Virus record (IMG/VR): IMGVR_UViG_3300046507_000773
Span: 1-64,000 of that record
Strand: one strand, 5' to 3'
DNA: 64,000 nucleotides
The position numbers and the translations under genes are program-made. A model generated the notes under the pieces. The model was given only the letters and a program-made list of their open reading frames with translations, was not told the DNA's origin and did no database searches. This document shows, one piece after another, positions 21,057-23,707 of the stretch; position 1 is the first letter of the stretch, and each line of letters begins with the position of its first letter.

Positions 21057-22400
21057 GTGAGTAATGACAATGTTTTGGGTACCAATAAAAAGCTGGAACT
21101 GTGGCGCAGTCGTTTGATCGATCTGCTGAAAGATGCAGCGGCCGATGACGTGTTTCTGTCGATGTCCACCGTCGCGGAAGGTCAACCCATCACCTATCCG
21201 TTTGACCGCGCCGCAGTTCAGGCGATGAGTGAAGACGGCCAGTGCAGCTACGAATCGATTTCCTTGCTCGATCAGGAACCGGTTGTCATCGACGAGGAAC
21301 GTGCAGTGGTTGCCAATGTTTTCGTGGTGGCCACGGAAATGCAGAAGTTCGAGAACAAAGAGCGCGTACCCCTGGACCGTGAAGAACTGCACGCCAAGCC
21401 GTCGATAAATGTGATGGTGTACTCGACCGGCACCGGTACTGGCGTCGCTTACGTGACCCACCAGATCGCCGAGTTCCTCTCGTACCGCGGCTGGGACGAA
21501 GTGTATCTGCACGCCACCCACACCATCGACGCCGTTCGCACCATGATGAAGAGCGGCAGTGGTCCGTACACCCATCCCCGCAAAGGCGATGATTCGGCAA
21601 CCTGGGACATCCCGATTACGGTCGCGATGGACGAAGGTGCCAAGAACGAGAACCGAGACCTGCACGAAGTCGTGGTGCGTGAAGCAGTACCGGAATGGCT
21701 CAATGACATCATGCCGGGCTCGCATGCTGATGCAGTCCAGCAGGTCAACGGCCGCTTCCAAACCGACGGACACTTCGGCAAGGAAGCGGTGATCTTCAAC
21801 ATGAATCCGGGCGAACCGTTCTTCATCGTCTTGGGTCGTGATCCGCAAGCGCCGTACCTGGTCGAGCAGTGGGCAACTGACCGCCAACAGATCGAACCGG
21901 AAGATCCGAAGATCCTCAATGCACTGAACATCGCTTCCATGATGCGTCAGTACAAAGACGATAATCCGACGATCGGCATGCCCAAGCTGAAGTTCGAGCA
22001 GTACCTGGAAAAAGAACTGATCATTATCCCGAACCGTGAAAAGCCGTACACGGAAGAAGAGATCCTGATCATGGTGCAAGAAGTTTTGCATCGTGCAGTT
22101 CTGTCGGGGGTGAACGTGCACATCCAGCACAACACGGCGATCATCCACCTGGCCGTCGAAAACGCAGTCGAGCAGCAACTGGCAAACGTCAGCAAGCTCT
22201 CGGCCGCAGCTGGCAAGGATGTGCTCATCATCATCTACGAAGAGGACATGCCGGTGAAAGCCTGGGGGAGCCATGACCTTCTGTATTCGCACTTCGGTAA
22301 GGACGTGGCCGACAAGATCACGTACTACCGTCCTGGTGAATACGAGGACATGCGGGCAGCGGATGAACTGATCGTACCGGATGCTCCGGCTACGCATTAA
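21057..22400 (+). CDS. Multidomain hypothetical protein with a degenerate P-loop-like module
   Basis: 447 aa. INVMVYSTGTGTGVAYVTHQIAEFLSYRGW resembles the 57-59 kb family. Also EPFFIVLGRDPQAPYLV. Confidence 0.8.
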   Translation: MSNDNVLGTNKKLELWRSRLIDLLKDAAADDVFLSMSTVAEGQPITYPFDRAAVQAMSEDGQCSYESISLLDQEPVVIDEERAVVANVFVVATEMQKFENKERVPLDREELHAKPSINVMVYSTGTGTGVAYVTHQIAEFLSYRGWDEVYLHATHTIDAVRTMMKSGSGPYTHPRKGDDSATWDIPITVAMDEGAKNENRDLHEVVVREAVPEWLNDIMPGSHADAVQQVNGRFQTDGHFGKEAVIFNMNPGEPFFIVLGRDPQAPYLVEQWATDRQQIEPEDPKILNALNIASMMRQYKDDNPTIGMPKLKFEQYLEKELIIIPNREKPYTEEEILIMVQEVLHRAVLSGVNVHIQHNTAIIHLAVENAVEQQLANVSKLSAAAGKDVLIIIYEEDMPVKAWGSHDLLYSHFGKDVADKITYYRPGEYEDMRAADELIVPDAPATH

Positions 22401-22491
22401 TTTTTCATCGTTGTACCTATTGTTATGTACGAGAATGTCGCTATCCTTCGTCGTTGGAGGTGGTTGCTATCTAGTGCTCCTAATCCAGACC

Positions 22492-22605
22492 TGATCCGTC
22501 TGAAGAGCCGTTAAAGTCGGCAGCGGTTTCCTTAAAGATATCGCTTGGGCTTGGACCCACGAAAGTTGGGGGAGGTACGCCATTACTTCCCCCTTCTAAC
22601 GGACA
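22492..22605 (+). ncRNA. Candidate type I hammerhead ribozyme with expanded stem II
   Basis: Stem I TCCGT/ACGGA; core CTGAAGA (22500-06); G22507-C22560; GAAA (22561-64); stem III with a 10-bp GGGGGAGGTA/TACTTCCCCC helix; CTA cleavage triplet at 22596-98. Confidence 0.7.
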
Positions 22606-22626
22606 TTTTTCTAAAGGAGAATCGAA

Positions 22627-22815
22627 GTGGCCGAAGATGCAAAGAAGGAAAAGAAACTGTTTGAAGGTCGACAGGCTGACACAGTTCAACGCGGCGTGTG
22701 TGCCAACCTGGCAAACATGCGTGCCAAAGATATCGTGATTGCACTCTCCATCGCACGGGAGCACAATCCAGAAGTACAAAAGGCGCTCGACGAAATTTCT
22801 GCAGTCAAGCGCTAA
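22627..22815 (+). CDS. 62-aa hypothetical protein between two structured RNA elements
   Basis: AAAGGAGA RBS, GTG start, normal composition. Confidence 0.75.
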   Translation: MAEDAKKEKKLFEGRQADTVQRGVCANLANMRAKDIVIALSIAREHNPEVQKALDEISAVKR

Positions 22816-22829
22816 CAGTCTTTGAAGTT

Positions 22830-23050
22830 GAGAGTTGAGCCGTACGGGTGCCCTTCCCCGCACTGGAGCCTCTTAATGGAAGAGAGTCTCACTCGTTTTC
22901 TCTAAGGTGCTGGCTTCCTTGCGGCGGTCGCTGGTAACTTGGCCTGAAAGGTCTCCTTTCCCTCCCCCAGGTCCTAGATGAGAAGACGAGTGCCCATGCT
23001 CACGGCCCAACCGTGAGAGAGACAGGGAGGTAACTTGGATAACTCCCACC
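22830..23050 (+). ncRNA. Candidate structured non-coding RNA
   Basis: 13-bp long-range helix 22890-902/22980-92, 7-bp hairpin 22999-23017, GGTAACTTGG twice, no RBS-led ORF, ends at a UUCG hairpin. Confidence 0.55.
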
Positions 23051-23062
23051 TATAACCAATGG

Positions 23063-23092
23063 GTCCCTCGGTCTTCGGATCGAGGGGTCTTT
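23063..23092 (+). terminator. Terminator-like hairpin
   Basis: CCCTCGGTC-TTCG-GATCGAGGG followed by TCTTTATGCCG. Confidence 0.75.
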
Positions 23093-23221
23093 ATGCCGAA
23101 TTTTTTTGTTTGCAGCATAAAAACCCCCACCAGACGGTGGGGGAATATGCCGTACATTTACAAGATGCGTTTTATACCAGGCATCCATATCACTTGGATG
23201 TGGCAAAGGAAAGAACAGCAG

Positions 23222-23707
23222 ATGACTAACACAAAAAACTATCCACCTATGGTGGTGCTCGAACTTGAGCGTACGTTCCCGTGGTTGCTGGACATTGCGG
23301 CAGACTTAGAAGGTCAGTGCACCGTTGATGAGTTGCTCAATCATCTCTTTGAATTTCTGCGAGATGAGATCAACATTACGGATGCTACCAAAATGCTCAG
23401 ACTGGGATATCGTTTCCCAGAGCACGGCGAGAACGAGGAAGAGCAAAAGAAAAAGGATGAAGAGCAGATCAAAACGTTTGTCAACGTACTGCGTGAAATC
23501 AAAGATGCGCTTGTCAGAGCACAAGTCATCACGGCGTTCGAGACGACGCCTTATCGTTTCCACCGAGCTTTTGGTAATGGCTCCATAGTGCTTGTGCGTG
23601 CTGACCTAGCACCACTCAAGGGGAAGCTTATGGAAACGCCACCACGGCCCGTAGAAAGGGTGTGGGAGACTACATTTGGTCGAGATATGGAGTATCGGAT
23701 TGCTTAG
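23222..23707 (+). CDS. Hypothetical protein, dispersed member of the 42.6-43.8 kb paralog family
   Basis: VVLEL...PYRFHRAFGNGSIVLVR. CCATATCACT motif ~30 nt upstream. Confidence 0.75.
   Translation: MTNTKNYPPMVVLELERTFPWLLDIAADLEGQCTVDELLNHLFEFLRDEINITDATKMLRLGYRFPEHGENEEEQKKKDEEQIKTFVNVLREIKDALVRAQVITAFETTPYRFHRAFGNGSIVLVRADLAPLKGKLMETPPRPVERVWETTFGRDMEYRIA

Follow-up and report, generated by a model that had tools for sequence, protein, structure and literature searches.

The DNA analyzed here (the window) is the whole 64,000-nucleotide stretch at positions 1 to 64,000 of IMG/VR record IMGVR_UViG_3300046507_000773, a 226.8-kb contig. The 725-aa major head protein matches phrog_3231, and its best database relatives are from jumbo phages, such as Burkholderia phage FLC9 at 50% and Ralstonia RP12/RP31, and we take the source to be a phiKZ-like jumbo phage. 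The element of interest (22495-22603, + strand) lies on the coding strand between a 447-aa gene that ends at 22400 and a 62-aa gene, ORF62. No tRNAs were detected in the window, and a sigma-70 scan found no promoter near the element. The features of this region are as follows.

22416..22430 (+), conserved motif CCTATTGTTATGTAC, which opens the unit just after the stop codon of the upstream gene; inferred to be, probably, a phage promoter or transcription start region
22431..22494 (+), 5' leader predicted to be removed by cleavage, with a hairpin (about 22440-22464) and CUCCU (22479-83), which is complementary to the downstream Shine-Dalgarno sequence
22495..22499 (+), stem I, 5' strand (UCCGU)
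22500..22506 (+), core strand C3-U4-G5-A6-N7-G8-A9 (CUGAAGA)
22507..22521 (+), hairpin 1, read here as stem II: GCCG/CGGC, 4 bp, with loop UUAAAGU
22522..22545 (+), hairpin 2, a variable arm (AGCGGU/AUCGCU with a 12-nt loop)
22546..22559 (+), hairpin 3 (UGGG/CCCA, loop CUUGGA)
22560..22564 (+), C22560, then G12-A13-A14-A15.1 (CGAAA)
22564..22597 (+), stem III: A15.1-U16.1, G-C, a 2x2 U/U internal loop, then a 10-bp hairpin
22598..22599 (+), predicted cleavage site: H17 = A22598, with the scissile bond between 22598 and 22599
22599..22603 (+), stem I, 3' strand (ACGGA), the 5' end of the predicted 3' product
22614..22815 (+), Shine-Dalgarno sequence AAGGAG (22614-19) and ORF62 (GTG 22627 to stop 22815), directly downstream of the ribozyme in lineage A (defined below)
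22816..23097 (+), conserved structured 3' RNA domain ending in a terminator-like hairpin (about 23061-23089), probably part of the same transcript

The initial annotation described a hammerhead core in which stem II is replaced by a four-way junction, and its observation holds in every coordinate. Stem I pairs 22495-99 with 22599-603, and is followed by CUGAAGA, G22507, C22560, and GAAA (22561-64). Stem III comprises A22564-U22597 and G22565-C22596, two U.U mismatches, and ten pairs (22568-77 with 22584-93), and CUA occupies 22596-98. Between G22507 and C22560 sit three adjacent hairpins, CCG/CGG (22508-10 with 22518-20), AGCGGU/AUCGCU (22522-27 with 22540-45), and UGGG/CCCA (22546-49 with 22556-59), and UUAAAG occurs in two loops (22511-16 and 22532-37). 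The minimum-free-energy fold of the 114 nt from 22492 to 22605 gives stem I, the three hairpins, and stem III (−44.7 kcal/mol, z = −3.0). In the longer 240-nt context (22401-22640), however, the energy-minimum fold contains the leader hairpin but replaces stem I by a hairpin containing AGAC/GUCU.

Taken alone, the motif is weak evidence. The core strings (CTGANGAG..CGAAA) are expected 0.44 times per window, and a lenient type-I hammerhead descriptor hits 0.36 loci (stem I of at least 4 bp) or 0.13 loci (at least 5 bp) per dinucleotide-shuffled window, such that the bare motif is not significant. Given the core, the observed combination of stem III and stem I is reached by 6 of 2000 shuffles of the downstream sequence. 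The Rfam models, one of the checks proposed with the initial annotation, do not detect the element: none of RF00163, RF00008, RF02275, RF02276, and RF02277 matches at gathering score in the window, at E <= 10 in the 281 nt from 22380 to 22660, or at E <= 1 in three related contigs (L003-L005), and no other Rfam family is matched in these searches. The large insertions described below are the probable reason. What lifts the element above chance is its conservation, with covariation, in relatives.

Searches with homologues of neighboring proteins led to related metagenomic phage contigs (designated by L numbers), although the 447-aa and 401-aa neighbors gave only four or five such contigs, and more distant homologues of the 188-aa protein have no noncoding gap and no element. 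A covariance model built only from the window and its closest relative, L003, finds the element in L004 (E = 3e-8), L042 (5e-6), L045 (1e-5), and L043/L044 (0.018) and nowhere else in the 93 kb plus 31 kb plus 322 kb searched; it finds nothing else in the window. L057 and L058, found through ORF62 homologues, carry the element as well. L043 is identical to L044 over the element, leaving eight sequences in three lineages: A (window, L003, L057, and L058), B (L004), and C (L042, L043/L044, and L045). L005 (3107-3180) keeps the upstream motif, the leader, and the downstream RNA but lacks exactly the ribozyme segment, a presence/absence polymorphism at one position that marks the element as a discrete module. 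DNA similarity searches with the locus and with the element gave no real match among deposited phage genomes. An exact-pattern scan with CTGANGAGNCGTTAAAGTCGNC returned only the window's own contig among viral contigs, nothing in genomes, and one chance hit in metagenome contigs, which lies inside a 503-aa ORF that, judged by reading the sequence alone, we took for an ATP-synthase alpha-subunit gene. The looser CTGANGAGNNGTTAAAGTNNNC gave 34 other loci, none of which was accepted by the covariance model, indicating that the model is specific.

For lineage C, the covariance model misaligned the 3' half because it forced a local stem III, and we therefore searched downstream of each core, without reference to the model, for the best combination of U16.1, a non-G at position 17, stem I, and stem III. 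This search picks one site per locus: AGCAUGGGGA...UCCUCAUGCU, then A, then AGAG in L042; AGCAUGGGGA...UCCCCGUGCU, then A, then AAAG in L043; AGUACGGAGA...UCUCCGUACU, then C, then AAG in L045; and AUGGU(A)GGGGCG...CGCCCCGCUAU, then C, then AAAG in L004. These sites have 10 contiguous stem III pairs plus 3-4 stem I pairs in L042, L043, and L045, and 5+6 pairs plus 4 in L004. Shuffle controls reach these scores in 0.1-5% of trials per lineage, which is only moderately strong.

All eight sequences keep C3, U4, G5, A6, G8, A9, G12, A13, A14, A15.1, and U16.1. N7, the one free core position, is A in lineages A and B and U in lineage C, and H17 is A or C and never G. The three helices around this core change sequence while keeping their pairing. 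Stem I is UCCGU/ACGGA, CUUU/AAAG, CUCU/AGAG, or CUU/AAG at the same position. Stem II (hairpin 1) has compensatory changes at three of its four pairs, C-G to U-A in L003, C-G to U-A in L058, and G-C to A-U at the 10.1 pair in L042. Stem III shows compensatory A-U to G-C and G.U to U.G changes in L003, is GGAGAGG/CCUCUCC in L058, and is replaced wholesale in lineages B and C with pairing kept, becoming in lineage C a 10-bp long-range helix that encloses about 50 nt. In an alignment of the window, L003, and L004, 95.5% of cells are paired and 11 of 31 pairs have changes on both sides, against 0-1 in slid controls, although this alignment was fitted to the model; in a MAFFT-only alignment of lineage A, 4 pairs are compensatory, against 0-1 in slid controls. 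RNAalifold on lineage C independently recovers stem I, hairpin 1, and hairpin 3, and the minimum-energy folds of L042 and L043 reproduce stem I, hairpins 1-3, and the long-range stem III. An invariant catalytic core, a free N7, a non-G H17, and covarying helices are the signature of selection on hammerhead catalysis, albeit here from only eight sequences in three lineages.

The interpretation offered in the initial annotation is partly supported. A hammerhead-type core with all catalytic positions in register, and a multihelix junction where stem II normally ends in a loop, are both borne out. However, G22507-C22560 had been proposed as a 1-bp stem II enclosing three hairpins, and G22507-C22521 had been treated as a competing fold that breaks the core. 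L042 is the only sequence in which position 10.1 changes (G to A), and it is also the only one in which the 22521 position changes (C to U), whereas the C before GAAA stays C, such that the proposed 10.1-11.1 pair would be an A.C mismatch in L042. Hairpin 1 is thus best read as a 4-bp stem II (10.1-11.1 = 22507-22521), with hairpins 2 and 3 plus C22560 inserted between 11.1 and G12, separating them by 38 nt. Neither reading is the canonical arrangement, in which the 10.1-11.1 pair closes stem II and G12 follows directly. C22560, invariant in 8 of 8 sequences, would be an extra junction nucleotide in the model supported by covariation. The other proposed competing fold, CCCAC-GAAA-GUUGGG, is not conserved in lineage C. 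G22507 could in principle pair with either C22521 or C22560. Hairpins 2 and 3 abut without a linker in the window and so can stack on each other, and stem II can stack on the core and stem III. Together these would give a classical four-way junction (stem II, hairpin 2, hairpin 3, and the core/stem III stack) of which the two pairings would be branch isomers, a step that is inference.

The inserted arms differ in their conservation. Hairpin 2 is 21-24 nt in lineage A and 58-97 nt and branched in lineages B and C, with no conserved loop; its UUAAAG is absent from L057 and L058. Hairpin 3 has a covarying stem (UGGG/CCCA against CAGG/CCUG in lineages B and C, which is two compensatory pairs), with the outer pair broken in L057 and L058, and its loop is YUYGGA in all sequences. 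The loop of hairpin 1 is UUAAAGU in 7 of 8 sequences and UUAAAGC in L058 (UUAAAGY). Stem I is short and has no obvious docking loop, and the usual tertiary contact between stems I and II was not identified. A candidate pairing of the hairpin 3 loop with UCCAG 22484-88 is contradicted by a mismatch in L003 and a deletion in L058, and kissing of the hairpin 1 and hairpin 3 loops shows no compensatory pattern. In lineages B and C, the hairpin 1 loop could pair with the ACUUAAC loop of the next hairpin, but both are invariant, such that covariation cannot speak to this pairing.

The flanking sequences are conserved as well. The upstream motif CCTATTGTTATGTAC is exact or near-exact in the window, L003, L004, L005, L057, and L058, with a related ...TATGTTATGTAC in L042, L043, and L045. 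It occurs once in the 64-kb window and is not a general promoter there, but it could be a dedicated phage promoter or start site. The leader hairpin is kept with changes in L058. In lineage A, the leader CUCCU (22479-22483) is complementary to 22615-22619 of the ORF62 Shine-Dalgarno region, and an AGAC/GUCU hairpin (22487-22490 with 22498-22501) would occupy part of stem I and C3-U4; both pairings are invariant in the four lineage-A sequences and rest on complementarity alone. ORF62 is a real conserved small gene, encoding a 59-62-aa protein found only in the four lineage-A loci examined here, with 73-92% amino acid identity in L003, L057, and L058, an in-frame indel, and an excess of third-position changes. 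Family searches gave no assignment, the only hint being a weak, subthreshold match to DUF1846_C (E = 0.007).

ORF62 is followed by an unannotated structured RNA domain of about 280 nt (window 22816-23097; L003 5759-6042, L004 6427-6700, L005 3674-3951, L042 2059-2343, L043 3207-3488, and L045 3215-3490), with invariant blocks (GUUGAGCC, GAGUC, CUUGCGGCG, UGCCC, and GACAGxGxGGUAAxxUGGAUAAC) and a terminator-like end. In an alignment of these seven loci, RNAalifold predicts 62 pairs, 39 of them with compensatory changes. No Rfam family matches this domain, and a pattern scan with a block from it found only the window's own contig. The longest ORF that follows (23093-23707, +) starts at an ATG inside the conserved UUUAUGCC tail of the domain, but the L003 homologue aligns only from about residue 50, so the true start in the window is probably further downstream, which would leave more noncoding sequence after 23097. 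In lineages B and C and in L005, the stretch between the ribozyme (or the upstream motif) and the next gene is a gene-free conserved RNA of about 0.7-0.8 kb (L004 5925-6700, L005 3122-3951, L042 1642-2343, L043 2776-3488, and L045 2809-3490). It begins with a covarying hairpin whose loop is ACUUAACAGUU and ends with the same 3' domain, and it may be a new large phage noncoding RNA. The window lineage keeps only its 3' domain and has ORF62 in place of the rest.

We consider it probable that this element is a type-I hammerhead self-cleaving ribozyme (open end at stem I) with a canonical core, a very short stem I (5 bp here, 3-4 bp in relatives), and two further hairpins plus one C between stem II and G12. 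The sequence, its conservation, and its covariation are established by the present analysis, whereas catalysis, the start of transcription, and the consequences of a 5'-OH end are inferred from them. In this view, the unit is transcribed from the motif at 22416-30, and the RNA folds and cleaves between A22598 and A22599, releasing a leader-plus-ribozyme fragment of about 170 nt with a 2',3'-cyclic phosphate and leaving a downstream RNA that starts with a 5'-OH, 28 nt before the ORF62 start codon. Because stem I is so short, the products should separate at once and religation should be negligible. In lineages B and C, the same predicted ribozyme sits directly in front of the noncoding RNA of about 0.8 kb, and the general role would therefore be to set a defined, leader-free 5' end. 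Cleavage may also free the Shine-Dalgarno sequence from the leader CUCCU, change or protect against 5'-end-dependent decay, or insulate the unit from read-through transcripts of the upstream gene. A caution is that an insertion of about 38 nt or more next to G12 has no precedent that we could find and could impair the A9-G12 stack.

A regulated hammerhead, in which the extra junction or the invariant loops bind a phage or host protein or a small molecule that switches cleavage, as the initial annotation inferred, is possible but unlikely. The loops of hairpins 1 and 3 are invariant across lineages whose stems have diverged, and lineage A has the alternative AGAC/GUCU and CUCCU/AGGAG pairings. 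In lineage C, moreover, the 5' strand of stem III (GCAUGGGGA / GUACGGAGA; L042 1570-1612, L043 2701-2746, and L045 2737-2773) can pair either with a nearby partner or with the distal strand that carries the cleavage site. These partners are mutually exclusive and both covary with it, suggesting a folding switch or an ordered folding pathway in that lineage only. However, a conserved ligand-binding domain is not seen: hairpin 2, the only arm large enough for an aptamer, is not conserved, and no riboswitch family matches. Ligand or protein switching is therefore not supported, and the conserved loops are equally well explained as tertiary contacts that replace the usual stem I-stem II docking.

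Slightly less likely still is a hammerhead-derived RNA that no longer cleaves and is kept as a folding scaffold or protein-binding 5' domain. The unprecedented insertion beside G12 might disable catalysis, Rfam models do not score the element, and L005 does without it. Against this reading, every catalytic nucleotide is invariant whereas the single free core position and all helices vary, H17 avoids G in 8 of 8 sequences, as expected for selection on catalysis and not on a scaffold, and a short stem I next to the predicted cleavage site is kept by covariation. Two other structural readings are rejected. An intrinsic terminator at 22568-93 is not called by a terminator scan, and the hairpin is followed by UUCUAACGGAC and not directly by a U-tract. 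A K-turn or C/D box-like motif (UGAUGA...CUGA) is excluded because the CUGANGA and GAAA strands join three different helices and are not opposite each other in a two-way loop, and UGAUGA becomes UGAAGA in lineages A and B. Chance resemblance, in which an ordinary structured intergenic leader or a terminator-like hairpin at 22568-93 happens to contain CUGAAGA and GAAA, is very unlikely despite the shuffle frequencies given above, as the same core and topology recur in three lineages with different helix sequences, and the many substitutions among the relatives argue against their being assembly duplicates of a single sequence.

Hammerheads that flank genes in phage and prophage transcripts are established (Perreault et al. 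2011, PMC3088659; Rfam RF00163, RF00008, and RF02276). They share the catalytic core (CUGANGA, GAAA, A15.1-U16.1, and H17) with three helices around it, a location between phage genes on the coding strand, and a proposed role in cutting phage transcripts into defined units. Those examples have a simple stem II of 1-6 bp, closed by a loop or open (type II), whereas here two hairpins plus a C lie between stem II and G12, and stem III can hold about 50 extra nucleotides. We found no report of a natural hammerhead with helices inserted at this position and none of hammerheads in phiKZ-like jumbo phages. Discontinuous or expanded natural hammerheads (the rodent Clec2 3'-UTR hammerhead; Rfam HH9/HH10) show that the core tolerates very large insertions in a peripheral helix, but their insertions sit in a distal stem or loop, far from the core, whereas the extra helices here emerge at the core-proximal end of stem II. 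Engineered aptazymes and the RiboJ-type 5'-UTR insulator graft extra RNA domains on stem II or remove an upstream leader so that the mRNA starts at a fixed 5'-OH end a short distance before the ribosome-binding site. Those are designed, with the sensor replacing loop II through a communication helix, whereas here the arms are natural, the big arm is not conserved, and no ligand is indicated. The natural hairpin ribozyme, which has a different fold, core, and context (plant satellite RNA), uses a four-way junction that aids folding at physiological Mg2+, a possible analogy for what hairpins 2 and 3 do here. Non-circularly permuted hammerheads (Eckert and Weinberg 2023, PMC10085705) show that hammerhead architecture is more plastic than the three classical types and that standard models miss such variants; those change strand connectivity and create pseudoknots, whereas connectivity here is the classical type I, with an insertion.

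More tentatively, this element could represent a previously unrecognized architectural class of natural hammerhead, in which a conserved four-way junction at the stem II/G12 boundary, with invariant UUAAAGY and YUYGGA loops, would replace the classical stem I-stem II docking or make cleavage depend on a phage factor. Such a ribozyme would mature the 5' end of a novel structured RNA of about 0.8 kb and of a small-protein mRNA in nucleus-forming jumbo phages. If so, current hammerhead models systematically miss such variants. If the element does cleave, the most conserved edge of the hammerhead core (11.1/G12) can accept a two-helix insertion, widening the structural range of the best-studied small ribozyme. 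This would explain why curated covariance models miss the element, making more hidden variants likely, and the natural four-way junction could serve as a scaffold for ribozyme switches. It would be, as far as we could find, the first hammerhead tied to phiKZ-like jumbo phages, and by marking the 5' end of an unannotated, covariation-supported large RNA, it would give a handle on RNA processing in phages that transcribe with their own polymerases.
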